DNA of 64,000 nucleotides, taken from the NCBI GenBank assembly GCA_052426225.1, contig JBNJNM010000006.1:1860001-1924000 (forward strand), read 5' to 3'. A program made the translations under genes and the position numbers. Under the pieces are notes generated by a model. That model ran no database searches, was not told where the DNA came from, and saw only the letters and a program-made list of their open reading frames with translations. Positions within the stretch are counted from its first letter, which is position 1. Each line of letters opens with the position of its first letter. Positions 25,374-64,000 of this stretch are shown here, piece by piece. Origin of the DNA: Zancudomyces culisetae HAW-14-8. Taxonomy: Eukaryota > Fungi > Kickxellomycota.

Positions 25374-27168
25374 GCCTTATCTGATTATTATAGCCTTGTT
25401 TGGTTGTCTACTTTTATATTTATTTTTACAAATATCTAGAATATATATTTTAGTATCCTACGATCTTATTAGTATTCTAAACTTTACAAGTAGTGATATG
25501 TGGAGTAAAATGTATCAATCAAGCTGACAAAAATACAATGCAGTGAAAGAAAAAATTTAACCATTAGTTGACCTAAATAAATTTATTATTGTTTACACTA
25601 GCACAGGATGCGTTTTTATTTGCTAAAACTATTTTGCTCCATCGTTCAGTTTATCAATAAACTATTGGTTATTTTTATTTATTTTTTCTGTTTTCCTAGG
25701 CTAGTGTTTATATGTTTGCTAAAAAAAATTGACATTGGTGGGCAGCTTGAAGTAATATTTTAACCCAAGTATATAAAGCCTTAAATGAAGTACAAGGTGG
25801 AGTAAATTTCTATGAAAACAACACAAAACTAGTATTAGAATGGTCAGATAATTTATTGAATATAAATATTCACAAGACAAACCACATAAACTAGAAAACA
25901 CATGTTCACCACTATTCCCTAAATAGTTATAGCGGAATAAACCTATCTATGGTAAATAGCTAAAGAAATGGGGTTTGTTTCATTTTCAAGAGCTGTACAG
26001 AATGTTGGTAATAGCGTTTACTGACTTTAGAATATTCCTTTTTGAGAATATACATGCCTGATTATCCAAAAAGCCAGGGGAAAAAAGACTCTGTTCATAC
26101 CATTTTTAATCTACTCAAAGTTTTGTGACGTTTTTTTACGTTATTTTTTTCCATTTTAGCACTAGTCGTAGACTAAGTTTAGTATGTTAATAGACATAAT
26201 AAGAAAGGTTAAATAAAGATTAATTTATAAATATTAAACTAATAGAGTTGAGGAATAGTATTCAAGAAACAAGTGGACAGGCTTAGTGTTTTCTATGGCC
26301 AGAAAATATCATATCACAAAAAAAGATAAAACCACCGATTAATAGTTCAGTATCACTGGTATTATTTTTATAAACTACCCGTTGCTGATATATAACAAGT
26401 GAACTAATGAATACACCTTGAATTGGTGTCAAGTGGTACAGATCCTTTTCTATATTTCGGGATCCCTAACACTGGAGTATACAAGTAGAATCAGAGTGCG
26501 TTTATAGTAGAGATTACCTTTTAAGTATTAAAAATGCGCTGTTAAATGCTAGAGCAATAAAGGCATCGGCTAAAGGAATTACATGGTCAATCCAGAACGT
26601 TTCTGACAAATAATTGGTAGTATAAATATCATTAGCTAATAGTGAAAAAAGCATTCAATGCTTCATCATCAAAGATAAAACCCAGTGACAAATAAGAGTG
26701 GAACAAAAAAAGTGAATGTAACTACACGAGTAGTGCGATGCATATAGATTGGGTTTGTCATATCATATATATATGTATTTGCACGGGCTTATAGCTGATC
26801 CAATAATTTAGCTGGGGTTTATCCAGTTATGCATAAATGTGACAGCAACTTTTTCAACTCTAACTTCAAAATGCACAACCAGGGAGAATTTTAGAAGCCA
26901 GAAAAAATAATTGGGGAGGGTGGTTGATGTTGCAAATCAAATGGCTTCAAGCATGCCTGCTGATTTCGCTTTAAGTAGTCAACACATAGTTAAAACTAAA
27001 CAACAGGATTTGAAATTGAAATTAAAACTTCAAGTCTATATATGGTCCACACCTGCTCGAACCAATGTTGCCAATTTTAGCAAAAAGGTACAGCAAAAAA
27101 AAAGAAAATAAACTACTGGCTGCTGGGTTAATTAGATTTTAGATTTTCATCTCACACTGCTTAAGCAC

Positions 27169-27604
27169 CATCTTTATCATATCTATCAATTCTAATTAAT
27201 GGGGTTTTTCACTTAATGTGCTTTGTTTTGCTTTGGCTTTTTTGTTTTATTGGTTCATTTTGGTAATACTAATGATAGTGTCAGCTCAACTATCTATGTG
27301 CGTTTCGGAATGTGACAAAGCTTAAACGAATGAAACCCAAGGTTGTAGTGTGACTGCAATGAACATTTAACATCTATTTGTGATGGTTCAAGATTTGATG
27401 TTGGCGACTTGAGACACTAGGGAATTCCAGCCGTGCTACACTGGATAACTGGTTGTATGTTTGTATGTTTGTATGTTTTTTTTGTAAAATTGTAACTGGA
27501 GAGCTAAAGTATACGTCGAATTGTTAAAGCTGAAGAAATGTACCAGCGCTTATTATATTTTGTGCGAATAGTTTACTGTATAGCACCATCAATTTGATAA
27601 TCTT
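27169..27604 (+). repeat. 436-bp non-coding block, copy 1 (direct repeat of 30909-31345)
   Basis: Direct comparison by eye gives about 9 differences, including one extra T, over ~436 bp. Confidence 0.93.
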
Positions 27605-28692: not shown

Positions 28693-30207
28693 ATGGAGCA
28701 GGAAAACTCGGGCCCAGAGAAGGGCGTAGCACAAAAGAGTGCAATGAATAGCCACCTAAATCGAGGGTTGAAGAGGAGACACATGTCTATGATTGCCCTT
28801 GGTGGTGCAATTGGTACAGGTCTTTTTATCGGCTCTGCTGGTGGTCTTGTCACAGCTGGCCCCGGAGGGCTTTTGGTAGCATATACCGTCACAGGACTTT
28901 TGATGTTTTTCACAATGTGTGGTTTAGCAGAAGTGGCAACCTATGTTCCAGTTACGGGTACGTTTATGGCATACAGTGAGCGCTTCGTTGATAGAGCTCT
29001 TGGGTTTGCTATTGGATGGACATATTGGCTCAGTCGTATTCTTGTAATTGGAACAGAGTTTGTTGCTGCTGGTGTGTTGGTGAGCTACTGGCTCCCTGGT
29101 ACACCTAAATACATCTGGGGCCTTGTAAGTGCTGTGATTGTATTTACATTTAACATCTTCCACGTCAAAGGTTTTGGTGAAGCAGAGTTCTGGTTTGCGC
29201 TTATAAAAGTCATCATGATTCTCGCATTCATCGTGATTGGTGTATGTATTGTATTTGGATGGCTCGGAGGTGTAAAATATGGAGTTTCGTTATGGCACTA
29301 CAAAGATGGACCATTTGTAGACGGGTTCAGAGGCACCATGTTTGCCTTTGTCTTTGCTGTTTATGCATATGAAGGTTCGGAAGCTATCGGGCTTACTGCT
29401 GGAGAATCAAAAAATCCAAAAAAAGACGTTCCAGCTGCTATACTTACTCTTTTTTATAGAGTTATGCTCTTCTACGTTGTATCCATTTTTCTCATGGGCC
29501 TTATTCTGCCATACGACGATCCATCGCTCAGTTCTCTTGGCCTCGCTACCGTCAAAGTTGCGCCGTTCACCCAGGTTTTTAGCAAGGCTGGTATTGCTGC
29601 CGCTCCTCACATAGTCAATGCTGTTGTGTTGTCATCCGTGCTATCTGCCTGTAACACAAACTTGTATACATCGTCAAGGCTGTTGTATTCATTACATCAC
29701 TTTGGACATGCTCCAAAGATCCTGGCAAAAACAACAAAAAACGGGGTTCCATTTATTTCCTTGATTCTTACGGAATGTTTGGGGCTTTTGTTCATTATCT
29801 TGGCTGAGTATTCAAATAACGCGTACCTATTTTTGGTGAATATGAGCAGCATCTTTGGATTGATGGGTTGGACTACCATTTCGATAGTTCACATATTTTT
29901 CAGAAGAGCATATAGACTGCAGGGCTACAAAGTGAAGGACCTCCCATACAGGTCACCATTGTATCCATTTGGACCATACTTTTGTCTCACATTTATTGCC
30001 TTTATTATTGGAAGTCAGGTTTATGCTGTTATAATTAAAAAGCAAACTGTCCTTCAGAAGGTATCCACGCTTATAGGTATTCCGATCTTCCTTGGTCTTT
30101 ATTTGAGCTACAAAATAATCAAAAGGCCAAAGTTTGTAAACCCTTATGAAGCTGATCTAATAACGGACTCTTCTAACTACATTGACTATACTGCTACCGA
30201 TGCTTAA
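28693..30207 (+). CDS. APC-superfamily amino-acid permease (YAT/LysP-like), paralog 1, 504 aa
   Basis: LKRRHMSMIALGGAIGTGLF, GEAEFWFALIKV, GSEAIGLTAGESKNP and about 12 hydrophobic segments. Intronless. Confidence 0.95.
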   Translation: MEQENSGPEKGVAQKSAMNSHLNRGLKRRHMSMIALGGAIGTGLFIGSAGGLVTAGPGGLLVAYTVTGLLMFFTMCGLAEVATYVPVTGTFMAYSERFVDRALGFAIGWTYWLSRILVIGTEFVAAGVLVSYWLPGTPKYIWGLVSAVIVFTFNIFHVKGFGEAEFWFALIKVIMILAFIVIGVCIVFGWLGGVKYGVSLWHYKDGPFVDGFRGTMFAFVFAVYAYEGSEAIGLTAGESKNPKKDVPAAILTLFYRVMLFYVVSIFLMGLILPYDDPSLSSLGLATVKVAPFTQVFSKAGIAAAPHIVNAVVLSSVLSACNTNLYTSSRLLYSLHHFGHAPKILAKTTKNGVPFISLILTECLGLLFIILAEYSNNAYLFLVNMSSIFGLMGWTTISIVHIFFRRAYRLQGYKVKDLPYRSPLYPFGPYFCLTFIAFIIGSQVYAVIIKKQTVLQKVSTLIGIPIFLGLYLSYKIIKRPKFVNPYEADLITDSSNYIDYTATDA

Positions 30208-30908
30208 ATGACTCTGTCTATTATTTTCTTTCTGGAATTAGTTAATCAATACACTTGCTCTTAATAAACATTAATTAATATTTAGATGTAATAAAAACTG
30301 GATATTTATTTACCTAAAAGTACAAACCCAAAAAGAACCGACTACATACTGGTTTCAGCTAACAAGAAATGATCTCATGTTTTTCAACTAAGATGAAGGT
30401 ACATATACCATGCCAAAGAGGATGCTGCATCAGAAGGAAATTAGCATTGCGTTGAACTACGTCCACAGTTAATACACTTTGAGCTAAAACCTATAGTTTA
30501 TATATCTTCATATTCGTTGTCAATAGCTTTCAGCAAAAAGTTGGTGAATAAATTTGAAACAACGGATGTATAAATTACGGATGTTCCATGTAAATTATAT
30601 GTTTTTAATATTGTATCAATAACTCTTATCTTTAATCTTCTTCAATCTAGCCGGAATGGTGCATCTATTTTAGATGCGATACAAACAAATAGCATAAGCC
30701 ACAGAGGAACTATCTCTATTTGCAGACCTTGATTGACTCGAAAAACAACACATAATTTTTTTGATGGTATGCGATTGTATTTCAGCCACCTGTATGGCTT
30801 TATTTATCTTGAGATACTTAGAAGTAAATGAAAATAAAAATAATAAAAATAAACTGCTAGCTGTTCACTCATTAGCTGCTGAGCCTTCAGCTCAAATCAC
30901 ATAAACAT

Positions 30909-31345
30909 CATCTTTACCATATCTATCAATTCTAATTAATGGTATTTTTCACTTGATGTGCTTTGTTTTGCTTTGGCTTTTTTGTTTTATTGGTTCATTT
31001 TGGTAATACTAATGATAGTGTCAACTCAACTATCTATGTGCGTTTCGGAATGTGACAAAGCTTAAACAAATGAAACCCAAGGTTGTAGTGTGACTGCAAT
31101 GAACATTTAACATCTATTTGTGATGGTTCAAGATTTGATGTTGGCGACTTGAGACACTAGGGAATTCCAGCCGTGCTACACTGGATAACTGGTTGTATGT
31201 TTGTATGTTTGTATGTTTTTTTTTGTAAAATTGTAACTGGAAAGCTAAAGTATACGTCGAATTGTTAAAGCTGAAGAAATGTACCAGCGCTTATTATATT
31301 TTGTGCAAATAGTTTACTGTATAGCACCATCAATTTGATAATCTT
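30909..31345 (+). repeat. 437-bp non-coding block, copy 2 (direct repeat of 27169-27604)
   Basis: Near-identical to copy 1, at an offset of 3740-3741 bp. Confidence 0.93.
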
Positions 31346-32504: not shown

Positions 32505-34019
32505 ATGGAGAAACCCAAATCAGGCTCAGAGAAGGGCGTAGCACAAAAGAGTGCAATGAATAGCCAGCTAAATCGAGGGTTGAAGAAGAGACATATGTCT
32601 ATGATTGCCCTTGGTGGTGCAATTGGTACAGGCCTTTTTATGGGATCTGCCGGTGGTCTTGTCACAGCTGGCCCCGGAGGGCTTTTGGTAGCCTACGCTA
32701 CCACAGGACTTTTGATGTACTTTGTTATGTGCGGATTGGCAGAACTAGCAACGTATATGCCTGTCACTGGTGCATTCGCAACATATTGCGAACGTTTTGT
32801 TGATCCGGCTCTTGGATTTGCTATCGGATGGACATACTGGTTTGGTTGGATTCAAGCAGCGGGAACAGAGTTTGTTGCAGCTGGCGTATTGGTGAGCTAC
32901 TGGCTTCCAAATACCCCGCAATACATCTGGGGTATTGTTAGTGCTGTGATTGTCTTTACATTTAACATCTTCCACGTCAAAGGTTTTGGTGAAGCAGAGT
33001 TCTGGTTTGCGCTTATAAAAGTCATCATGATTATCGCATTTCTCATAATCGGTGTCTGCGTTGTATTTGGATGGCTCGGAGGTGTAAAGTATGGAGTTTC
33101 AAATTGGAAAATCGGTGAAGCCCCATTTGTAGATGGTGCAAAGGGTACCTTATTTGCATTTATATTTTCGGTTTATTCGTATGGAGGATCAGAGACTATT
33201 GGACTAGCCGCTGGAGAATCAAAAAATCCAAAAAAAGACGTTCCAGCTGCTATATTTAATCTTGTTTACAGAATCGTACTCTTTTATGTTCTTTCAATAT
33301 TCATTATGGGTCTTGTGCTGCCGTACAACGATCCTTCACTCAGTTCTCTTGGCCTCGCTACCGTCAAAGTTGCGCCGTTCACCCAGGTTTTTAGCAAGGC
33401 TGGTATTGCTGCCGCTCCTCACATAGTCAACGCAGTTGTTTTATCATCCGTTTTATCATCCTGCAACACAAGTATGTATTCTTCTTCAAGGATGGTATAT
33501 GCATTGTACCACAATGGACAAGCTCCAAAATTTCTGGCTAGAGTATCAAAAAGTGGAGTTCCATATACCTCTCTAATCTTTGCAGTGTTTTTAGGACTTC
33601 TCTTTGTTTTACTGTCGGCACTTTTGGAGAATGCTTACGTATTTTTAGTTAATATGGGTGGTATCTTTGGAATGGTGAGTTGGGTAACTATTGTGACAGT
33701 CCATATTGCTTTTAGGAGGGCATACAAAGTACAAGGCTACGACGTTAAGAATCTTCCTTACAGGGCACCTTTGTATCCATTTGGCTCCTACTTTGCATTT
33801 TTGCTCCTGGCTGTTATAATAATCGGCCAGGTAGCGATTGTTTCTACACGAGACCAGGATGTCGTAGGAAAAATATCTACCCTTGCAGGGCTTCCTCTTT
33901 TTGCTTTCCTGTTCATAGGGTACAAAATTATAAAAAGAACAAAGTTTAAAAGGGCTAGAGAAGTAGATCTTGAAACTGATGCATCCACTTATATTTCCTA
34001 TGAAACCGAAACTGCTTAA
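32505..34019 (+). CDS. APC-superfamily amino-acid permease (YAT/LysP-like), paralog 2, 504 aa
   Basis: Colinear and equal in length with paralog 1, with the same signature motifs. Contains the NWKIGEAPF loop. Confidence 0.95.
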   Translation: MEKPKSGSEKGVAQKSAMNSQLNRGLKKRHMSMIALGGAIGTGLFMGSAGGLVTAGPGGLLVAYATTGLLMYFVMCGLAELATYMPVTGAFATYCERFVDPALGFAIGWTYWFGWIQAAGTEFVAAGVLVSYWLPNTPQYIWGIVSAVIVFTFNIFHVKGFGEAEFWFALIKVIMIIAFLIIGVCVVFGWLGGVKYGVSNWKIGEAPFVDGAKGTLFAFIFSVYSYGGSETIGLAAGESKNPKKDVPAAIFNLVYRIVLFYVLSIFIMGLVLPYNDPSLSSLGLATVKVAPFTQVFSKAGIAAAPHIVNAVVLSSVLSSCNTSMYSSSRMVYALYHNGQAPKFLARVSKSGVPYTSLIFAVFLGLLFVLLSALLENAYVFLVNMGGIFGMVSWVTIVTVHIAFRRAYKVQGYDVKNLPYRAPLYPFGSYFAFLLLAVIIIGQVAIVSTRDQDVVGKISTLAGLPLFAFLFIGYKIIKRTKFKRAREVDLETDASTYISYETETA

Positions 34020-36590: not shown

Positions 36591-38118
36591 CACTGCGGCT
36601 TCGTCACCTTCTTATTCTGAAGTACTGGAAGCCTCAACTATTTCCTCTTGTAGTATTTCATTTTTAGTAATAGCTGTAATCTGTAAGACTTTCCTGTTAA
36701 GACTTGAATATTTTAAGATTAAATTATTTATTACTATTAATTATTTAGAAAAATATGGTATTCAATAGTGAATAAGATATTTTTCTCTGAAGTTCTCTTT
36801 CGATGGATTTCGAAAGGGTTTTTATACTTTTACTCCAGAGATTTTTCCATATAAAATTTTCTTAAGTAAAGTTGCTATCAAACTATAAATTTGACTATTA
36901 AACTTATGAGTAACTGATGTGATTAACTACCGTGAGTTTAGTGTGTCAATGATTGCGTCATTCATGTTATTCTGACGATTCTTTGAATTATTAGTTTCGG
37001 AATTCTTTCTAGGTTTCTTATTTCCTAAAATGGTCTGTGAATATTATTATAACAAATTTCATCGCGAAATTCATTTTTTACTTGACTTGGTTAGATTAAT
37101 TTAATAATTTGTACTTAGTTACATTTAATTAATTTGTACTTAGTTACATTATAGTAATTTGTATATGGTTACAATTTCATTTTGTAACCTACTTGATTTG
37201 GTCATGGAGAATTATAATAAACATGAATATATTTAATTTATTTTAAAACAATTCCTAACATTTCCGTTAACCCATAAATCCACAATCTGGTCCTTGTAAT
37301 ATATTTGTGTTTCAGTCTTTGACACGCATCAATACCCAATATCAACGGGACTGCGCATTCCTCGACAATAATAAATTCCAAGATCGTTTTTGCTTCCTCT
37401 GCCCATATCACTTCAGTTTAAACGTATTCTTCAGATTTCAATAGGTCTTCTCCAACCAGCTTGAAGTAAACTGATTTAGGTAGTCTCCGAAATTTTAACT
37501 AAAGAACTAATTCTAACTTTTTATTTATTAAAGAATACGAAGCTCCAGAGTCTACAAAAATTGGTGTTGCTTGAATACCAATATGTCCTATAATGTAGCT
37601 CGAGTCATCCTCTGCATTCATATCGGTGGTTGCGTACAGTAACGGTTACCTACCTCCGTCCTGTATGTATCTCCTAAACCCATTATAAAATTCCCTTTTT
37701 TCTTTGGTTTTGCTTCGAAATATATATCCAAGGTGATCGGTGCCGGGGCGGATAGTAGCCTATTTAATACCTCTGTCTCTATCGTTTTCTTCAATGACGG
37801 TCTCACCTTTTTATTCTTTTTCTTTGCAGATGGTTTCTTATGTTCTATGATTATCCTTTGACTTATTTCTTCAGGATTCAGTAGATTTGATACCGGCAGT
37901 GGTGATTGTTATGAGAGTTTTCAATTGTCTCCCGATACGGCGGGTCCAATGAATGCGCTGGTGCCGCAGCGGCTACTGCAAACACCTGTGTGGGATTCTC
38001 TTGGTTTCCCTCTTTAGTCATAGTACATATCTGTGTATTTCCGTTCTATTTTACTCTGTTGAATCTGGGCGGTGCCCTTTTTTTCCATAGTTAAAACAGG
38101 CAACTTCCGTCCAATTTG
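36591..38118 (-). pseudogene. Decayed Ty3/Gypsy gag-protease remnant, related to 45567-48716 and interrupted by solo LTR 36695-37260
   Basis: The minus strand reads IIGHIGIQATPIFVDSGASYSLI (aspartic protease, ~37530-37600) and ACFNYGKKGH (decayed CCHC, ~38075-38105). The reading ..WVNG|KSYRLQLL continues across the solo LTR. Confidence 0.75.
36695..37260 (-). mobile_element. Solo LTR (566 bp), distantly related to the LTRs of the intact element at 51262
   Basis: TGTTA...TAACA termini and a 5-bp TSD TTTCC (36690-36694 and 37261-37265). On the minus strand it starts TGTTAGGAAT like the 51262 LTR and shares its TATA-region architecture. Confidence 0.88.
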
Positions 38119-39433
38119 TGTTGAATACCAATATTATACACAATAATGATGGTATTAACTATTTAACACACAGTTAATTTATAAAAGTTATTATAAATTA
38201 TTGTAGTTTAAAACACACAGTAATAATATAATATTATTTAATAATATCTTTATATTGTTAAACTAGATTGACAAACTTAATTGTTCATGAAAAGGATTTG
38301 TATCACCTTTTATACAATTAAGTTATTTATAAATATTATTATAAAACTTAAACTAGTATAAAACTAATAATAATAAATTATTAAGCCTACATCATTAATA
38401 TACACAATATTAATGAAGATACATTTAATATTGATCAAGTGTATCAATATAAATGTTTTAAACTAATTATTAAATAATAATTAAATAATATAAACTAAAA
38501 ATTAATTAATATTGTATTTAATATACAATATTGTTATGATACACGTGTATTCATAACACTACCCCCCACTTAAGGGTACTTACCGATGTTTTTTATTCAG
38601 ATTCGCGTTCGTTTTCGATCTTGCTGAGCCAAAATTCTTGTATTTTTTCATGAGCGTTAACATCCTGTTCATGCTCCCAACTTCGCTCTTCAGGTCCATA
38701 TCCTTCGTAATCAATGTAATAATATGTTATACCATCAATTTCTTTTGTATCCAAATTTTTATTTACCACATATTCTATTTTATTATTGATGATTACTGGT
38801 GATGGTGGTCTGATGTCTGGTCGTATCACTAATTCTGATGCGTGATATTTTTCTAATAATGATACATGAAATACTGGATGTATCTTCATGTTTGGTGGAA
38901 TTGTAGCTTAAATGTGACGTCGTTTATTATTCCTATAACCTTGTATGCACCTATCTTTTTGTTGTCCAACTTATTTGTAGGCCTTGTAGTTTGTATATTT
39001 TTTCGTATTAACCATACCTTATCACCTATTTTGAACTTTGGATGTCGTTTTCGGTTTCTGTCAGCAAACTTTTTATCAGTTTTAATTGCATTTTGTAACA
39101 CTTTTTTGATGTCATGATGATGTTTTTCCAGTTCATTTACACGGTTTTCAGCACTTGGAATTAACTCAATAGTTGGTATTTGTGGTGAAAATGTAGTATC
39201 AAAACCATATAAAGCTTTAAATGGTGACATCTTAATTGCACTGTGATAAGCATTATTGTATGAATATTCAGCTAATGGCAGTAGTTTGCACCAGTTATCT
39301 TGCATGTAGTCGCTATAACACCTTAAATATTGCTCCAATGTTTGATTAGTACGCTCAGTTTGACCATTAGTTTCAGGGTGATAAGCACTTGAAAGTTTTA
39401 TTTTTACGTTTAATAGTTCGTAAAAACGCTTCC
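38119..39433 (-). mobile_element. 3' fragment of a chromovirus (integrase C-terminus, chromodomain, PPT, 3' LTR 38119-38558), same family as 62992-64000
   Basis: SSAYHPETNGQTERTNQTLEQYLR, KIHPVFHVSLL and a chromodomain EYVVNK..YYIDYEGY..SWE. It has a 1-bp frameshift near 38890 relative to the copy at 63.8 kb. The PPT is at 38559-38572. Confidence 0.88.
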
Positions 39434-39586
39434 TGTCAATATCGCATTATTTACCCATAGTTTTACAATTTATTTTTAAACTATTTAATTACATTTGAAT
39501 CCTAACTTGGGAACATTAAGTTTCCCAACTTAAATAAATTAGTTTCCTGACATTTTGGGAAACTTCTAATTATTGGTTAAGAGTTA

Positions 39587-42991: not shown

Positions 42992-43290
42992 TGTTATAAC
43001 ACACGTACACCATATAACATTAATTTAACTATTTTAATTAAAAACTAATGTACTTAATATATTCACATTTGATTAATTATTACCATGATGTTAATTAAAA
43101 CCGTGAGTTTCAAAAATGTCTCAGAATATTGAAATTAATTTTCAAAGAGTAATATCTCGCTCAATAATATCCAGATATTATATAAGATTTATATTATTTT
43201 ATGCACAATCGATATAATAAAATTATAATTTTGTAATTTAATTGGCTAAAAATTCATTAAGAAATTGATATTGATATAATTTTAAAAATG

Positions 43291-43614
43291 TGTCAGGGTC
43301 TGGACTTGGATAAAATATATTTATTAATAAACTAGACTATTAGTGAATAAACTAAACGAAACTACACTCGTTGTAAAACTTATCGTTCCATCATGATAAT
43401 CGTATATCTTATATACTTTTCATGATGGGACGATAATGTTAAAAATATACTAATTTAAAACATAACTAAAACATAACTAAAACATAACTAAAACATAACT
43501 AAAACATTTAAATTAATAATGTGGAGGTCGGTAAATGTTATGGTTATAATTGATAAATTATATGAAACATTGTCCTGTGGAGACAAAGGTTTCATATAAT
43601 TTAAAACCATAACA
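43291..43614 (-). mobile_element. Solo LTR (324 bp) inserted upstream of the Tc1 transposase
   Basis: TGTCA...TAACA termini with a 5-bp TSD AAATG (43286-43290 and 43615-43619). Contains an 11-bp tandem repeat (TAAAACATAAC x4, 43456-43499) and a minus-strand TATA at ~43408-43416. Confidence 0.85.
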
Positions 43615-43757
43615 AAATGAGACAATTTTTGGAATTTTACAAAAGCAAAATTTAAACTATCATAACATTATGAATTCCAATCTTAAATTATTAAAACAAT
43701 TACATATAATAGTATTATAATTATTTTAATAATTATAAAATTAATCGTTAACAAAAA

Positions 43758-44768
43758 ATGATATCTGAACAACGTAAACTGGATATTAAAAACGCGTTAC
43801 TTGAAGGCAGAAGCATTGACCAAATCATTATAGAAAATGGAGTTAGTAAAGCAAAAATATACAGAATTAAAGCAGCTATGAATATAAATTTACCGGCTAA
43901 TAAACGCGGTCGACCAGCGAAGCTTTCACCCCAAAGCAAGCGAATATGTACTAGGATGATATTATCTGGAGAGTATCGATCTGCTACTTCGATACAAAAG
44001 AAGTTAGAAATGGATAATATTGTTAGTGCTAGTAAGTCTACAATATATAGGGCTTTTAATGATCTTAAAGCCGTTGCAAAAAAGTTGGCATCCAAACCGA
44101 AACTGAGCCTTAAAAATATTGCAAAAAGGTTGAGATTCGCAAAATCTCATCGCCACTGGACTACTGATGAATGGAGGCGAGTAATTTGGTCCGACAAAAC
44201 TAAAATCAACCGATTTGGATCTGATGGAAATGAATGGACTTGGGTTCGTGATGGTGTGAGTCTACAGCCGCACAATATTAACCAGACCGTAAAACACGGT
44301 GGAGGATCATTAATGATTTGGGGATGCATCACAGCATTTGGAACTGGCTACATGTGCCGAATAGAAGGAATGTTAAACAAGAAAGGTTATTTAAACATTT
44401 TAAAAAACGAGCTTAGCAATACAATAAAGTACTACAAGTTGGATCCCAAGTCAATAATATTTCAACATGACAATGATCCTAAACATACCGCAAAGTTAGT
44501 TACCAGCTGGCTTGAAAACCAGGAATATAATACATTGGACTGGCCGCCACAATCTCCAGACTTAAACCCAATCGAAACTATATGGGCAATCATCAAAAGA
44601 CGCCTAAATAGATACTGTAAACCACCATCCGGGATGATCGAATTATGGGAGCGAATTGAATCGGAATGGAAAACAATTACAGAGGAAACAATACTTGGTC
44701 TTATAGATATTAATTTCAAAATCGTTAAGTCAGTTATCAAGTCTGAAGGAATGTTGAAAATAATATAA
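43758..44768 (+). mobile_element. Tc1-family DD34E transposase (336 aa); TIRs not identified
   Basis: N-terminal HTH and GRP motif, VIWSD, KHGGGSLMIWGC, FQHDNDPKH and WPPQSPDLNPIE, with 34 residues between the second D and the E. The usual SDE reads SDK and the C-terminus is diverged. Confidence 0.92.
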
Positions 44769-45566: not shown

Positions 45567-48500
45567 GGACAGAAAGGATCCACACCGGATGCTATCTATA
45601 GCAGAAATATTCCAGGATGACAACATCTCGACGGTGATGACAAAGGTGTCAAAGCCGCAAAACACCTCAACGAGTACGGCACGTTTACGCTGGGAGCTCC
45701 CAGCGAGAACAGACGGAGAAGTTGCAACGAAAGGCTATGAAGAACTTTGCTCACGAAACCCAAAAGCAGCTGGAAAGAGCCGCCTCACCGCTGAGACTAG
45801 ATACCGGCATTGATGCGTTAACCGGGGAAGTAAAACATCTTGCATTAGCAATGCAAAAGATAAAGGATAGGAGAAGGGAACCTCTCACCTGTTTACTTAT
45901 GATGAGAAAGGACACACGTCCAGAACGTGTAGAAAGAAACCAAACCGGGAAGCGGGAAGTTCCGAGCCCAATAACTCAGTTCTAGCTCAAGAGCTCCAGA
46001 AAGCACTGAGTTAGCTCATAAGAGACCGCGATGACCATAGGGAACATTCTGAACCCGCAGCGAGTAATAGCGCATCCAAGAAAAGATTCGGTCATGTACA
46101 CGAAATTACGACAGCAAGGACAGATATAAAGGAAACCACAAAGGAAACAACCGCCGTCTGAATTGGCTGAACAAGTGTTGTCACAAACAGCTCCGATAAC
46201 CATTAGCGAGTTAATTCAGACAAGACCCCGGCTAGCCAACGATATGATACGAAAACTCAAAGCGATACCAACCCAGGGAAATAAACCCCTGATGTTTTCA
46301 AATTCCAAGGGTCAAAACCGCTAACCAGCGAAGACCTATCATAGATAATGGGATATATTGGCGAACAAAGCGCACCCATGTTTATTGATACCGGAGCAGG
46401 TTACTCGTTGGTCCGCCACTCGTTGACCCTTAAGCTAGGCCTCTCGATAGAGAAGTTAAGTAGCCCCATATTTTTCCAGCAGATGGGAGGAGAGGCACTA
46501 AAATCTACTGAATCCACGAAACTCCATGTCACTTTTGAAGATGGGGAAAAAGTATTTATTAAGTAAATTTTAGTTCGTATTTGCATAGTTCCGTTCAACC
46601 TTATGATAGACATATTACAGGAATTGGAAGCTGTTATAAATTTAAAGAACAATTATTAACGTTGAAAACAGGAAAAATTAAAACAAATTACAGTTACTAA
46701 ACCAAAAATTCATAGTGTCATTAGATGAGGAGGAACATTCAGCTCAAGCGATGAAAACGATAACCAAAGTGTGAGTGGGTCAGCAGAGATCGAAGACAAG
46801 GAATAATATATTACGGTCCCATTTTATTATAGTAGTATAAATGCAGAGCTATCAGACGAGGGATGACCTGAGTGCATAGAATATAGTTTAGGAAGCCAAG
46901 TGAAGTCGATAGATAGTTTCGAGAAAATATCTCCACTTTTAACGGGATACGTAAAAATATTTAAAAAAGAAATAGGAACAAAATTTATTAGAAATGCGAA
47001 GTTCAAAATAAAAGTAGTACCGGAAGCAGAGCCGTTACCGCAAAGTTGCGCAGGTATCCACCGGAAAAATGGAAAGAAATTCTGACCCATGTACATGATA
47101 TGGAAAGCAGTGAAATAACAAGTGTTGTGAATAGAACGTAGTTCTATAATTTATTTTTAATTAATTTTATTTCTATTTTAGTTATATTAAATTACTAAGT
47201 TGTATTTACTTTATAGTAAAGTTATATAACTTGATTTAGGTAATCATGTAATAATTTATTACCAATTCGATTTTTAGTAACTGTTATTATTTTACATTAC
47301 CAAAACAACACAATGTTGAACTAAACCCCAACATTGAAAATCATGAAACTAATCAAGGGTCAAACTCCTTGAATGTTTATCGAAGAAAAAATATTTTCTT
47401 AATTCGATTTACAAGGTCTTGCGACCTTGGTTTTTTTCATGAAATTTTCGCTGACGAAAAAGTATATAAACCCAACGAAATTCGTTGTGGAAATCGTCAG
47501 TAAAAAATATTCTCTTTAGTTTAATAAAGTTAATATTTTTCCAATCCAAGTTATACTAAATAAAATATATTAAACCAAGTTATAACAGTTTCCTCATCCC
47601 CAGACTAGACGACTGCATATTATCACTAGCTGGTGCAGCAATTATCTCCACCCTGGATTGTGCTAGTGGATCTTGGCAGTCACCGGTAGAGGAAAACTAA
47701 AAAAATTTCAACGCTTTCATTTCACGCAAAGGTTTTACGAATTTAACGTTTTACCATTTGGGCTCTCAAATTTTCCGGCTCATTTCTCGAGATTAATGGA
47801 ACGAATACTAACTCCTTATATGTATGAATATGCCGTTATTTATTAGGATGACGTGGCTAATTTCCACTAAGACGAAAACTCACATCTAATCCATCTAAAA
47901 AATATTTTACGTTTTGAAATTAAATATTGTATCATTAAATTTCGATAAGTGTCAATTTATGAAAATCAAATTTAATAATATGGAACATAGTGGGTCAAGA
48001 TAGACTATTAAACCTAATGCAAATAGCATGGAGGGACTGAAACTAAAACCTCAACCCAAGTATGTGAGGAGGTATGATCCATACTAGGAGTTGAAAACTA
48101 TTTTCGTAAATTTTTACCATTGTACGCTGAAAATTCAGCCCCCATATAAAAGTTTTTAAATTTCAACACAAGGTTTAACTGGGATAAAGGGTATATAGAC
48201 AGTTGGAACGCAAAAATACAATTCGAGCTTACAAGCTTTTCTAACGCAACCAAACCGGAATCAAAATTGTTTATTATTTACAGACGCCTCGGCCGTGGCA
48301 GTAGGCACAGTGTTAGATCAGAGAAACGGAGATTCCCTAATTCCAGTAAATACTATTCACATAAACTTAGCGACACGGTGACGTGATATTCGGCATACGA
48401 ACGATCGTGTCTGGCTATAGTGTTAGCCATCAAATATTTGCGTTCGTATTTAGCTTACAGCGATTTTACAGTCTATACCGACAATTCGGCTGCTAAATAT

Positions 48501-50040: not shown

Positions 50041-50481
50041 TGTTAAATACCGATATTATACACAAATTTATGGTATTAACTAACTATCACACAGATAGTT
50101 TTTGAAAGAACTAAAAAAATATTTTTAACACACAGTAATTATTTAGAATTTCTAATAAACTTAATAAGTAATAAATGAGATTGTTAAACTTAGTTGTTCA
50201 TAAAGGGAAATGTATACCCTTTTATCAACTATGTTTGTAATACAACTAATTATAAATCTAAATCTAATTATATCATAAATATTTATATCTAATAAACTTA
50301 TTTAATTAATATAATGCATAATAATGATGATGCAATATTATTAATCATGATTATAAATAATTATGTTTTAAACTTTATTTAAATATTAATTAAATATTAT
50401 AAAATTTAAATTAATATATCAAAGACTCACATGTAATATCATTAATATTAGACAATAAATATTGTATTTAATATACAATAT
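50041..50481 (-). mobile_element. Diverged LTR of the 38119/62992 family, missing its U3 terminal palindrome
   Basis: Aligns by eye with 38119-38558 and 62992-63478 (tgtt..atacc.atattatacac; aaactta.ttgttcat; attgtatttaatatacaatattgtt). Confidence 0.78.
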
Positions 50482-51261
50482 TGTTGTGAATCAATTAAAT
50501 AATATTAGGTATTAGATAAAGCTATACAAGTGTGATAGAATTCGGCGTTAGGTACTAAGCCCCTAAAAAGGGACATATTTAAATAATATTATGTTAAGTA
50601 TTATACTCATAGCTAGCTTACGATTGAATTTCATTAATATTTTAACATTTATATTTTAATTTTATAATTGGAGAAAATGACAAAATAATTCAAAAAAATT
50701 GCCATAAACTTAGTAAAAATATTAATAAGAATAATTTAAGGGGATATAAATGATTTTTATAATCTTCTATATAGATGAATTAAGTTTGTTTTATCCTTTA
50801 GTTCTATAGAAAATAAAGTAGTATAAAGATAAAAAATATAATATATACGGTACTTTAGTGAAACAACAGGTAGAACTTAGTCACTAAGTAACGGAAAATT
50901 AAGTAGAGCTTTTAAATTTGTTATTATATTACAGTAATGTTATAAAGTGTCTTGTACTACAACTAGACATTATATAATATCATCGCACCAATAACTATTT
51001 TATTTATTATTAATATTTAGGTTTATCAATTAATTATATTTAATATTATAGGATATTTAGTAATTATGTGTTGCCTAGTTTGTTTTATCCTTCTGGATTT
51101 TTTTTTATAAACATTCTGGTTTGTTATAATATTCAGTTTATATTATAAGTTTTAAATAATATTTGATATAAAGTAAATATGAGTAATTTAATTAAGTTTA
51201 ATTATGGCTAGGCGTTCTAGCTATAAAAATCATTTTCGAATAAATTTAAAACAAAAGGTTT

Positions 51262-52011
51262 TGTTAGGAATGGCAATATATTCCAAAAAATGGATCTTTG
51301 TTGGAATCGATCCTAAAATGTTAGGAATGGCAAATTTCCGGAACATAAATTTTAGTTTACATTTTTGTTCTATAAAAAATTAAACTATTTTATTATTTCA
51401 CTTACGACATTCAAATAAGCCATTCCGACATTGGAATCATGTATGCAAAATTCACCATGAAATCACAGTATTTATTATTGGGAAAATTGACAAAGAAAAT
51501 TAAAGAAAATTTTCAATAATTAAATTTATAAAATTCATGTTAAAATCGATATACAAAATCATAGGCAAAATCGATATACAATATCGTAGGCAAAATAGAT
51601 AACCAAAAACCATGATAAAATTGGATAACCAAAAACCATGATAAAATTCGATAAACAAAATACATGTTAAAATCGATAAACAAAATACATGTTAAAATCG
51701 ATAAAGTAATCTCATGAATAAATCAAACAAGAAGTTTGATAAACTCAATTTTGATAGTTACTTTAAATTAGTTCATTTTTACATAGTAAAATTTTAAAAC
51801 TAAAAAATTATTATCACTAAGTTTTTTCATAGCAAATTTCTCTGATGAAAAAATATATAAACCCTTCGAAATTCCGTTGGGATACATCAGAGAAAAATAT
51901 ATCATTAACTCATCTAATAATATATTTTTCTAAATAACTACTTCTTCCTAATAAATAATAATACTGAATATTAATCACAGCATAGTTATAAGCAGCTCAT
52001 TGTTTATAACA
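51262..52011 (+). repeat. 5' LTR
   Basis: Direct repeat of 56556-57305. Confidence 0.97.
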
Positions 52012-52013
52012 TA

Positions 52014-52025
52014 ATATTTTTCTCT
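52014..52025 (+). promoter_or_regulatory. Self-priming primer-binding site
   Basis: ATATTTTTCTCT is the exact reverse complement of AGAGAAAAATAT in the LTR (51889-51900). No TGG-initiated tRNA-type PBS is present. Confidence 0.82.
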
Positions 52026-56555: not shown

Positions 56556-57305
56556 TGTTAGGAATGGCAATATATTCCAAAAAATGGATCTTTGTTGGAA
56601 TCGATCCTAAAATGTTAGGAATGGCAAATTTCCGGAACATAAATTTTAGTTTACATTTTTGTTCTATAAAAAATTAAACTATTTTATTATTTCACTTACG
56701 ACATTCAAATAAGCCATTCCGACATTGGAATCATGTATGCAAAATTCACCATGAAATCACAGTATTTATTATTGGGAAAATTGACAAAGAAAATTAAAGA
56801 AAATTTTCAATAATTAAATTTATAAAATTCATGTTAAAATCGATATACAAAATCATAGGCAAAATCGATATACAATATCGTAGGCAAAATAGATAACCAA
56901 AAACCATGATAAAATTGGATAACCAAAAACCATGATAAAATTCGATAAACAAAATACATGTTAAAATCGATAAACAAAATACATGTTAAAATCGATAAAG
57001 TAATCTCATGAATAAATCAAACAAGAAGTTTGATAAACTCAATTTTGATAGTTACTTTAAATTAGTTCATTTTTACATAGTAAAATTTTAAAACTAAAAA
57101 ATTATTATCACTAAGTTTTTTCATAGCAAATTTCTCTGATGAAAAAATATATAAACCCTTCGAAATTCCGTTGGGATACATCAGAGAAAAATATATCATT
57201 AACTCATCTAATAATATATTTTTCTAAATAACTACTTCTTCCTAATAAATAATAATACTGAATATTAATCACAGCATAGTTATAAGCAGCTCATTGTTTA
57301 TAACA
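56556..57305 (+). repeat. 3' LTR
   Basis: Direct repeat of 51262-52011. Confidence 0.97.
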
Positions 57306-58260
57306 GGTTTGGTCTATATTCAATAGTGTATAACTTTATTTTGTATCTAAAAGAATAGCACATAAATTAGTTATTATAAATAGAATAATTTACAAAAGTA
57401 TTACGAAAATAGTGAATCTGTATTTTCGTCAACAAACTGTCGCATCAAAGATCGACATATGGGCGTCTCACTCGGGTTATCGAGAGTGAGATGTGATGAT
57501 TTACCTAGTGCTTTACACCTATGAGGTTTTGCACTATGCGTATATCATCATTTCCCAAATAATAATTAATTTCGGATAGTTTTTATATTTTTTATAGTAT
57601 TTTAATATTTTAGCATATACGAGAAAAATGCATTTATGCTCTGCTTTTTCTCTTATACGATTATCGCATCATATTTTCTGATAAGTGTTTAATATACACT
57701 TTATTAAAACAAAACAATATTAACAAAATAACTAAGGTCCTACCGCATATTGGTAGTAAATAAACCATTTCAAAATACTAGAGAAAGCTGTAAAGTCGGA
57801 TAAGACCGACAAATGGAATATAAATTCAGACAAAACACATGTGTTTCATTATTAACAATTTGTATAAGAGTAGCCGGATGTGCCTGAAAATGGTACACTC
57901 AGTACGAAAATGCAATTTCATTTTTGTTTAATTTTTTTATAAATAAATTCAAATAATTTTGAGTTCAGTATCGAATCAATTTTTCATACTGAGCTAGTTC
58001 AATAATGATGAATGTAAAATGTAAAATGATCCCAGGCATTTTACATTTATCATTAATTACAAACAAATTATTAATAATATTATAACAATAGTCATATTTT
58101 AGTATATAGTTTATATATAGTGGTTTAAAATTTGAATAATATATTTAAGGAGACGTATGGATGACACATGAAAACCTCATCCATGTCTCGATACGGAATA
58201 AAGAAAATATAATTAAATAAATTTATATTATAAAAACCAAAATTAACTCTTTAAATTACA

Positions 58261-62400: not shown

Positions 62401-62991
62401 CCTCCGTTCTTTTTCCAAACGGTCACAACTGGTGCACACCAGTCTGACTTGCATGCCTCAATGACTCCGGCCGTTTCCATGCGTGATAACTCTTCCCTGA
62501 CTAGCTGCTTCATTGCTTGCGGTACACGATAGGGTCTCAACTTGATCGGAGCGTTGTTTCCTGTTTCGATCTCATGTTCAATTACATCAGTAAATTCCAA
62601 TTCTGTTAGGTCATTCGCCAATATATCCTTATTGTCTTCAAGTAGTTCTGAAATCCTAGAATCTGTTACGAGATCTGCACCAGCGTTCTCTACTCTGCAT
62701 ACCTCCTTGGCTATACTTATCATAACTTCATTCCTCAGCTTATCCTTATCTTTACTTAGTTCGAGTGGGACAACGAGGGAATCCTCGTGGACTGGCAGTA
62801 TAAGCTCCAAGGTGTTCAAGTCAATTACTGCCGCATGCGTTTTAAGCCAATCTGTACCTAATACCAGTGACTCATTTTTCCCTTCCATTTGTAGTAAGTT
62901 TGCGTCAAATCTTATCCCTTTAACTTCCACGGGTACATCTGAGATTTTGTTGGATACATAATGGTGTTTGCCATCAGCTGTTAGTATTACC
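59419..62991 (-). mobile_element. Ty3/Gypsy element without a chromodomain: 3' LTR ~59419-59905 plus pol, interrupted in the protease by the element at 62992
   Basis: The PPT (AGGAGGGGGTC on the minus strand) abuts TGTCGTAA at 59905. The putative LTR end is ...TTACAACA at 59419. Confidence 0.85.
59898..62991 (-). CDS. pol: Pol (partial PR, RT, RNase H, integrase with GPY/F; no chromodomain), open up to the insertion point
   Basis: VLGTDWL, FIDD, TDASANG, HDHEH...CEIC, GIDAVGP/SDRG/IERFN and WEGPY. The stop codon lies inside the 3' LTR. Confidence 0.92.
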
Positions 62992-64000
62992 TGTTAGATA
63001 CCAATATTATACACTATAATATTGATATTAACTAATTAACACACAGTTAATTTATAAAAGTTATTATTAATTATACTAGTTTAAAACACACAGTAATAAT
63101 ATAATATTAGTTAATAATATCTTTATTATTGTTAAACGAGATTGACAAACTTAATTGTTCATGAAAGGGATTAGTATTACCTTTTATACAATTAAGTTTG
63201 TACTAAAACTTTAATGTAAACTAAAACTATTAATATAACTAACATTAATAAACAAATAAACTAATATCATTAATATACACAATATTAATGATGATACATT
63301 ATATATTGATCATGTGTATCAATATTAATGTTTTAAACTAATTATTAAGTAATAATTAAATAATATAAACTAATAATTAATTAATATTAATGATACACAT
63401 TTAATATCATTAATATTAATTAATACCATATTGTATTTTAATATACAATATTGTTATGATACATGTGTATTCATAACACTACCCCCCCTCTTAAGGTTAC
63501 TTACTAAGTGTGTATTAATCTGACTCGCGTTCGTTTTCGATCTTACTGAGCCAAAATTCTTGTATTTTTTCGTGAGCGTTAACATCCTGTTCACGCTCCC
63601 AACTTCTTTCTTCTGGTCCATATCCTTCGTAATCAATGTAATAATATGTGGTACCATCAATTTCTTTTGTATCCAAAATTTTGTTCACAACATACTCAAT
63701 TTCATTATTGATGATTACTGGTGATGGTGGTCTGATGTTTGGTCGTATCACTAATTCTGATGTGTGATATTTTTCTAGTAATGATACATGAAATACTGGA
63801 TGTATCTTCATGTTTGGTGGTAATTGTAATTTGAATGTAGCATCATTAATCTTGCTTATAATTTTGTATGGACCAATCTTTTTGTTATCCAATTTGTTGG
63901 AGGGTCTGACAGTTTGTATATTTTTTCGTATTAGCCATACTTTATCACCTATTTTGAACTTTGGATGTTGTTTTCGCTTCCTATCAGCAAACTTTTTTCC
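62992..64000 (-). mobile_element. 3' end of a chromovirus (LTR 62992-63478, PPT, integrase C-terminus with chromodomain 63515-64000), continuing beyond the window
   Basis: KIGPYKI, KIHPVFHVSLL and chromodomain EYVVNKILD..YYIDYEGY..SWE. The PPT is AAGAGGGGGGGTAG and the LTR is homologous to 38119-38558. Confidence 0.9.

Follow-up and report, generated by a model that had tools for sequence, protein, structure and literature searches.

A compensated U3 hairpin over the self-primer of chromovirus LTRs in Zancudomyces culisetae, and its possible role in masking the 3' primer copy

The DNA analyzed here (the window) is a stretch of 64,000 nucleotides from contig JBNJNM010000006.1 of Zancudomyces culisetae HAW-14-8, a fungus of the Kickxellomycota whose genome comprises 27 Mb in 25 contigs. 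It includes an intact LTR retrotransposon, designated family A1, whose two LTRs (51262-52011 and 56556-57305) are 100% identical. The ORFs of this element encode a Ty3-type Gag and Pol, with an 1178-aa ORF carrying RVP, RVT_1, RNase H, Integrase_H2C2, rve, SH3_Tf2-1, and Chromo domains, so that the Ty3/gypsy order of Pol and a C-terminal integrase chromodomain are both present. The nearest named relatives of its Pol are found in Mucoromycota (Absidia and Cunninghamella, 46-52% identity), and proteins from soil metagenomes reach 62%. The features of the A1 element used below are as follows.

51257-51261 and 57306-57310: 5-bp target-site duplication GGTTT, flanking the intact A1 element
51262..52011, forward strand: 5' LTR of the intact family A1 chromovirus, 750 bp, TG..CA
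51837..51847, forward strand: upstream (U3) hairpin arm, with TTTCTCT in common with the primer binding site (PBS)
51854..51861, forward strand: TATA box TATATAAA within the enclosed region, its TATAAA core 33 nt before the primer
51862..51882, forward strand: small inner hairpin between the TATA box and the downstream arm
51885..51895, forward strand: downstream hairpin arm, made up of 4 nt of presumed U3 and primer nucleotides 1-7
51889..51900, forward strand: predicted self-primer, the first 12 nt of R and exact reverse complement of the PBS
52014..52025, forward strand: PBS, 12 nt, starting 2 nt past the end of the 5' LTR
56556..57305, forward strand: 3' LTR, with a polypurine tract immediately before it
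57131..57189, forward strand: 3' LTR counterpart of the hairpin, expected to be transcribed whole

Elsewhere in the window, a Tc1/mariner-like transposase of 336 aa with DDE_3 and Tc3-type HTH domains is nested among the LTR elements (43758-44768, forward strand). Two tandem 504-aa ORFs (28693-30207 and 32505-34019, forward strand) share about 80% DNA identity, and the first of them matches an amino-acid permease family in Pfam; a 444-bp repeat, its copies 97.5% identical (27162-27604 and 30902-31345), flanks the ORFs.

A first-pass annotation of this DNA had pointed to a hairpin that spans the TATA box of the A1 LTR and reaches into the predicted primer. The stem between 51837-51847 and 51885-51895 is indeed made of 11 perfect base pairs enclosing 37 nt and is found in both LTRs, and the surrounding 76-nt stretch, folded as RNA, reaches -18.4 kcal/mol in RNAfold (z -4.88, with none of 200 shuffles as good). 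As had been described, the TATA box lies inside the loop and the stem covers the start of the predicted primer; the downstream arm contains 7 of the 12 primer nucleotides. The inner hairpin is stronger in two related subfamilies, A2 and A3, where its stem bases have changed and the pairing has been kept.

These subfamilies emerged from a search of the whole genome. A 313-nt LTR query retrieves 25 copies at 99-100% identity and about 15 at 81-84%, and a search with a short motif across the TATA box yields 91 sites belonging to three subfamilies (A1, A2, and A3), whose hairpin regions were compared copy by copy after retrieval of the flanks. Both hairpin arms are unchanged in the 82%-identical A1 subfamily, in which the flanks have diverged. 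The other two subfamilies are represented in the window by solo LTRs.

47445..47506, forward strand: hairpin of an A2 solo LTR; the common form of the subfamily has 12 bp including one G-U
36784..36841, reverse strand: hairpin of an A3 solo LTR, 10 bp including one G-U, z -4.5

The claim that these homologous LTRs retain the pairing with different bases holds for both, the core of the A2 stem (47451-47457/47494-47500) having a z-score of -4.3; the A2 copy in the window carries a G-to-A change in its 3' arm relative to the usual form of the subfamily. Between the A subfamilies, whose arms differ in sequence and still pair, three stem pairs have changed on both sides with pairing retained. One pair is T-A in A1, C-G in A2, and A-T in A3, another has gone from T-A in A1 to G-U in A2 with both sides changed, a loop-proximal pair is A-T in A2, T-A in A3, and unpaired in A1, and one further pair is either A-T or G-U. 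Covariation had been proposed as the check on such compensatory changes, and over 58 distinct family A copies it amounts to 0.235 against a shuffle mean of 0.106, a value that none of 500 shuffles reached, with the qualification that few evolutionary events from three lineages underlie it, so that cell counts overstate the evidence. Sliding the partner arm lowers the covariation to at most 0.066, and the change events sit precisely at paired positions; one pair occurs as UA in 22, AU in 17, and CG in 12 of the 58 copies. Individual dead copies often have one broken pair, as is expected after insertion. Two LTRs on contig 11 (L015 at 7.7 kb and L020 at 13.1 kb), which are both LTRs of one young A1 element, both carry an identical C-to-G substitution in the 3' arm, directly ahead of the primer, and a copy with a one-mismatch stem was thus produced by, or arose in, a transposition cycle.

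Stems at the corresponding place are also found in LTRs of the window that cannot be aligned with family A, namely those of families B, C, and D.

43380..43436, reverse strand: family B hairpin, 17 bp with one C-A mismatch, around TATATAAG, z -6.2
63145..63201, reverse strand: family C hairpin, 14 bp around TATAAAAGG, z -4.8
38274..38324, reverse strand: second family C copy, 11-bp stem, degenerate, z about -3
50186..50236, reverse strand: copy of a family C sublineage, G-C in place of an A-T pair, degenerate, z about -3
39507-39513/39522-39528, forward strand: stem TTGGGAA/TTCCCAA of a mini-LTR (family D), 7 bp, its 3' arm being primer nucleotides 5-11

In family B, whose LTR extends over about 43290-43666 on the reverse strand and whose PBS is TTGTAAAACTT, the 17-bp arms with one mismatch around a minus-strand TATA box are present as first described, and the final 2 nt of the 3' arm are the first of the primer, 34 nt past the TATA box. 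In the major, young lineage of this family, and only there, a one-base bulge is followed by 7 more base pairs (one of them G-U) over primer nucleotides 2-8. A double change from C-G to A-T occurs in a single family B copy, and a related copy has the one-sided intermediate. The family C LTR (62992-63478, reverse strand) has the PBS TTGACAAACTT, identified by pattern search, and the last 8 nt of its 3' arm are primer nucleotides 1-8. The layout that had been reported for this family at 63147-63199, around 38273-38324, and at 50186-50236 was recovered in all three places, together with the change on both arms. Among 30 genomic copies, drawn from the window, from other loci in which copies were met, and from pattern-search matches, two variable pairs read A-T/T-A in 12, G-C/T-A in 5, and A-T/A-T (the second pair swapped) in 2, the remaining copies having one mismatch or wobble each; the family has thus undergone two independent double changes. 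The mini-LTR of family D (39435-39552, 118 bp; primer 39518-39528, PBS 39555-39565), of which the genome has about 21 full-length junctions, fits the earlier description in part: its 7-bp stem is present, but it is weak and not significant alone (z -1.95) and sits between a TATA-like motif and the predicted transcription start site (TSS), with no TATA box in the loop. A TATA-spanning hairpin, first claimed for at least four families, is therefore a property of three (A, B, and C).

The LTRs of families B and C have further structural peculiarities. In each, the 5' end of U3 folds into a second, very stable structure (about 43535-43645, reverse strand, z -7.0, in B, and 63400-63460, reverse strand, z -5.7, in C), which in sliding windows is as strong as the promoter hairpin. 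In the family C copy, the flank on the U5 side (62980-62991, minus strand GGTAATACTAAC) repeats the hairpin loop at 63172-63183 in direct orientation at 11 of 12 nt; this flank is not a PBS. The unalignable families B, C, and D share a primer pattern, AAGTTT-NN-CAA, and the PBS pattern TTG-NN-AAACTT, and one C-type LTR junction is joined to a B-type PBS, which hints at recombination or at common descent of the priming module.

Several controls bear on the likelihood of such stems arising by chance. TATAWAA occurs 96 times in the window, counting both strands, and when these sites are ranked by the stem that encloses them, the LTR promoter stems come first; of the 88 sites away from them, only 3 score at least 11, and two of these three belong to other parts of the family C LTR. 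A 76-nt window slid along each LTR places the stem among its two most structured spots, and the folding z-scores of the main A, B, and C stems run from -4.3 to -6.2. The family C LTR is rich in hairpins, a second TATATAA within it being enclosed by an equally long stem, and for this family it is the covariation rather than the stem alone that carries the argument. The view that the stems are selected base-paired structures is well supported, both by covariation in families A and C and by the recurrence of one architecture in LTRs that cannot be aligned.

In the scheme established for Tf1, reverse transcription is primed by the first 11-12 nt of the RNA itself, which are cut off after annealing to the PBS (PMC10085805, PMC4600332). 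The elements of this genome resemble Tf1 in that the predicted first 11-12 nt of the transcript exactly complement a PBS located 2 nt past the 5' LTR, which applies to A1, A2, A3, B, C, and D, and they share with Tf1 and Tf2 the character of Ty3/gypsy chromoviruses with Tf2-type SH3 and chromo domains. In the families of this genome the PBS matches the R region of the element itself and not the end of a tRNA. Self-priming, which the first-pass annotation had assumed, is further borne out by the joint change of primer and PBS in A2 and in one family C sublineage. The PBS of each A subfamily was read from full-length copies; it is identical in A1 and A3, and in A2 it has gone from CTCT to CACT, matching a change of the primer from AGAG to AGTG. 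The U3 arm of A2 has gone from T to G where it faces the altered primer base, keeping a G-U pair, and the A2 PBS has an A at this place, which indicates that the arm was compensated on its own and did not copy the PBS. An origin of the U3 arm as a gene-converted copy of the PBS was rejected on this account.

In every family of this genome the LTR sequence complementary to the PBS begins 31-38 nt past the TATA box, and the same spacing holds for 10 of the 12 elements, relatives included, whose TATA box is canonical. If transcription starts at the first primer nucleotide, as this constant spacing would suggest, the upstream arm lies in U3. The downstream arm overlaps the primer by 7 of 12 nt in family A, 8 of 11 in C, and 7 of 11 in D, and by less in B.

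The degree to which the primer may be occupied was estimated as the ensemble free-energy cost of forcing it to be unpaired in a segment consisting of 80 nt of U3, the primer, and 6 further nt, compared with 200 shuffles of U3. This cost is 5-10 kcal/mol in A1, A2, A3, C, and D and exceeds that of shuffled U3 (P ≤ 0.015), whereas in family B, despite the strongest stem of all, it is 2.8 kcal/mol (P = 0.3), and family B is accordingly modelled as masking its primer only weakly. In a model of the RNA 5' end, running from the primer to past the PBS, the minimum free energy (MFE) structure pairs the primer with the PBS in B (10 of 11 nt) and D (11 of 11), and in A1-A3 a local hairpin within R wins over this pairing. 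In the 3' context of A1 the R hairpin takes up about 80% of the modelled ensemble and the U3 stem about 5%, and in A2 and A3 the U3 stem is included in the MFE structure. There are thus three possible partners for the primer in family A, which renders the specific contribution of the U3 arm uncertain.

The R hairpin of family A goes back to a second PBS-like motif, ATATTTTTCT, located in R about 22 nt past the primer (51922-51931 and 57216-57225 in the A1 element) and conserved at the same place in all three A subfamilies; with primer nucleotides 3-12 it forms a hairpin of 10-12 bp.

Comparison was extended to other organisms through 9 elements obtained by exact protein look-up and 80 loci from a metagenome scan. 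A PBS was accepted within 3 nt of an ACA if complementary to sequence no more than 450 nt upstream, and a looser rule required in addition a TATA box 27-42 nt ahead of the primer sequence. A primer/PBS pair was obtained for 13 of the 80 metagenomic loci, the matches of 9-10 nt among these being uncertain. In L124, L125, L128, L175, and L196 the primer itself forms the 3' arm of a strong hairpin whose 5' arm is located immediately upstream of the predicted TSS, and weaker hairpins of this kind occur in L127 and L129; L137 and L198 have the TATA-spanning layout, with PBS matches of just 9 nt, and in L130 the hairpin abuts the TSS. The unpairing calculation likewise predicts masking in L124, L125, L128, L129, L175, L196, L137, L138, and L198. 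Folding and unpairing tests revealed nothing of the kind in L120 (Cunninghamella), L122 (Microbotryum), L131, L133, and L160, and by the unpaired-primer test six better-defined foreign elements, L120 and L122 among them, lack masking. The L120 record, from Cunninghamella blakesleeana, has a perfect 12-bp hairpin with a 4-nt loop in U3, about 60 nt upstream of the TATA box and unrelated to the primer, and its TATA-to-primer distance is 58 nt instead of about 33.

Altogether, pairing between U3 and primer is seen in about half of the self-priming relatives tested from elsewhere. With the families of this genome included, the real primers give P ≤ 0.05 in 12 of 20 elements, as against 13 of 80 mock 12-mers taken from the same LTRs at four offsets from the primer, two upstream (70 and 100 nt) and two downstream (30 and 50 nt) (Fisher P = 1.8e-4, or 1.1e-3 if A1-A3 are counted once); the 16% of tests that mock targets pass indicates that the LTRs are structured in general. 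U3-primer pairing is thus a frequent, specific, and non-obligatory property of self-priming elements. Enclosure of the TATA box, considered as an essential feature, was rejected in view of family D and most foreign elements, which put the arm between the TATA box and the TSS, and it is one of two layouts.

The wobble pairs give some indication of the molecule that folds. G-U pairs on the sense strand occur in the lineage consensus stems of A2, A3, the family B extension, L127, and L128, and A-C combinations, which would be wobbles on the antisense strand only, are seen in the single mismatch of family B and in three family C copies. This pattern is suggestive of a mild preference for sense RNA or plus-strand DNA. 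With DNA parameters the stems fold on either strand, with z-scores of -3.9 to -5.5 on the sense strand, and such folds do not tell the two strands apart.

The best reading of these data, favored over its rivals and given a probability of about 0.45, is that the U3 arm masks the 3' copy of the primer. The U3 of each LTR would contribute a short segment that resembles the PBS and can pair with the U3/R junction and the beginning of the self-primer. In a sense-strand molecule with contiguous U3 and R, chiefly the 3' end of the genomic RNA, this segment would form a stable hairpin tying up the primer, and the RNA 5' end, which would start at the primer and lack U3, would leave its primer free to fold onto the true PBS and start reverse transcription, in the manner of Tf1. 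The hairpin would in this way distinguish two otherwise identical R copies of the primer, and because the U3 partner adjoins the 3' copy only, it could silence that copy alone. The 3' copy would thereby be prevented from pairing with a PBS and protected from cleavage by RNase H, a cut that would remove the acceptor for minus-strand transfer from the 3' R. Transcription start at the primer, formation of the stem in RNA, and the masking itself are what we infer here. Masking of this kind had been put forward in the first-pass annotation, and the stems, their covariation, the complementarity of primer and PBS, and the enrichment of the pairing in relatives speak for it; the weak masking in family B, the competing R motif in A1, the foreign elements that lack masking, the A-C combinations of antisense type, and the 16% pass rate of mock targets count against it.

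Another RNA function of the U3/R hairpin is an improbable alternative, though it has several observations to its credit. The hairpin would serve as a docking or pausing site in minus-strand transfer, in 3'-end formation, or in RNA stability, and its overlap with the primer would be incidental to the neighborhood of the acceptor site. In HTLV-1, 3'-end processing is reportedly controlled by U3-R structures. The 3' arm ends within R nucleotides 2-16 in every positive case, a region that minus-strand strong-stop DNA leaves uncovered, and the stems of family B and L130 are strong, abut the TSS, and barely mask the primer. U3 segments also participate in the priming of Ty3 (PMC5371799). What such a function does not account for is that in A, C, and D a part of the PBS recurs in the upstream arm, which in A2 also followed the primer change; this is expected of primer masking and not of a generic structural element.

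Masking by the U3 arm might also act in DNA, and this is somewhat less probable again. Plus-strand strong-stop DNA consists of U3, R, and U5 followed by a terminal copy of the PBS, so that its 3' end can pair with the beginning of R on the same strand. With the beginning of R engaged by the U3 arm, fold-back priming from this 3' end, which would yield a dead-end hairpin, would be blocked. Such a fold-back problem is specific to self-primed elements, in which the feature is enriched; sense-strand folds computed with DNA parameters are also stable and significant, and plus-strand DNA could accommodate the G-T wobbles of this strand. G-T is nevertheless weak in DNA, yet it is the favored substitution in A2 and A3. 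The proposal derives purely from the known scheme of reverse transcription, and no sequence feature separates it from the RNA reading, with which it shares the same exceptions (family B, L120, and L122).

A promoter element acting at the level of DNA, in which an inverted repeat around the TATA box or the TSS would bind a dimeric factor or extrude as a cruciform, is very unlikely. It would account for a position tightly tied to the TATA box and TSS, for the ability of either DNA strand to fold, and for the near-perfect palindromes with 4-5-nt loops at the TSS of L125 and L175. The arms, however, are wholly different between families and compensatory within them, so that pairing and not a recognition sequence is preserved, and on the opposite strand the G-T wobbles in the A2 and A3 consensus stems become C-A mismatches. 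A role in duplex DNA appears unlikely since the arm sequence is not conserved, the pairing is kept by compensation, and the spacers in families A, B, and C are long (37, 23, and 31 nt). Spacers of 23-37 bp disfavor cruciform extrusion, and families A-C have neither the short spacer nor the equal pairing on both strands of a cruciform palindrome; a cruciform is unlikely for the length of these spacers, and the sense-strand wobbles also speak against it. That the stems have no function, being either inverted repeats that arose by chance in AT-rich LTRs full of hairpins or remnants of a duplicated PBS, is scarcely credible, as the many other stems and the equally enclosed second TATATAA of LTR C, the insignificance of the mini-LTR stem alone, and the 16% background pass rate are set against about seven independent both-side changes that keep pairing, arms invariant amid the diverging flanks of the 82%-identical A1 subfamily, a clear enrichment over mock targets, and the A2 arm, which has a G where the PBS has an A and hence is no copied PBS.

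Pairing of U3 sequences with the priming apparatus has precedents, from which the predicted masking of the 3' primer differs in definable ways. In HIV-1 and HTLV-1, the poly(A) hairpin and the U3-R structure, respectively, allow duplicated R signals to be used in a position-dependent manner and thereby regulate polyadenylation. As in these viruses, the two R copies would behave differently since U3 sequence adjoins the 3' copy only, whereas the feature described here concerns priming and not polyadenylation. The CYC5-CYC3 cyclization of Ty1 and the complementarity of HIV-1 U3 to tRNALys3 are cases in which U3 pairing controls reverse transcription. These contacts are long-range, between the 5' and 3' ends or between primer and U3, and promote strand transfer; the present hairpin is local and predicted to be inhibitory.

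In Ty3, a member of the same retroelement superfamily, the PBS is bipartite, its 5' PBS and 3' U3 segments binding separate arms of the tRNAiMet primer (PMC5371799). The elements described here resemble Ty3 in having U3 sequence at the 3' end of the genome that is complementary to the primer of reverse transcription (PMC5371799). The U3 segments of Ty3 contribute to assembly of the initiation complex and connect the two ends of the genome (PMC5371799), whereas the U3 segment found here would compete with the PBS for the same primer bases and pair in cis with the neighboring R copy. With a primer derived from the element's own R and with U3 arm and PBS directed at the same bases, the arrangement is not a bipartite PBS of the Ty3 type. 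It is also distinct from the pretzel structure of Tf1, which is formed by R, U5, and PBS-adjacent sequence at the RNA 5' end, in that the stem uses a U3 partner absent from that end. No U3 partner of a self-primer was found in the literature on the 5' UTR pretzel and on the Ty3 bipartite PBS, the original Tf1 reports being outside the scope of this search.

Self-priming has been studied almost solely at the 5' end of Tf1 RNA, and the question of how an element avoids the identical primer copy in its 3' R has apparently not been raised in the literature found. A partner encoded in U3 would be a simple answer to the duplicate primer, and it would add a third co-evolving partner to primer and PBS. 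The wider proposition, that self-priming LTR retroelements generally lock the 3' primer copy through a partial PBS copy in U3, that this lock is needed for efficient retrotransposition, and that it co-evolves with primer and PBS as a three-part module, is tentative and on balance doubtful. In fungal chromoviruses without RNA data, the U3 partner could help to annotate the TSS and the U3/R borders.
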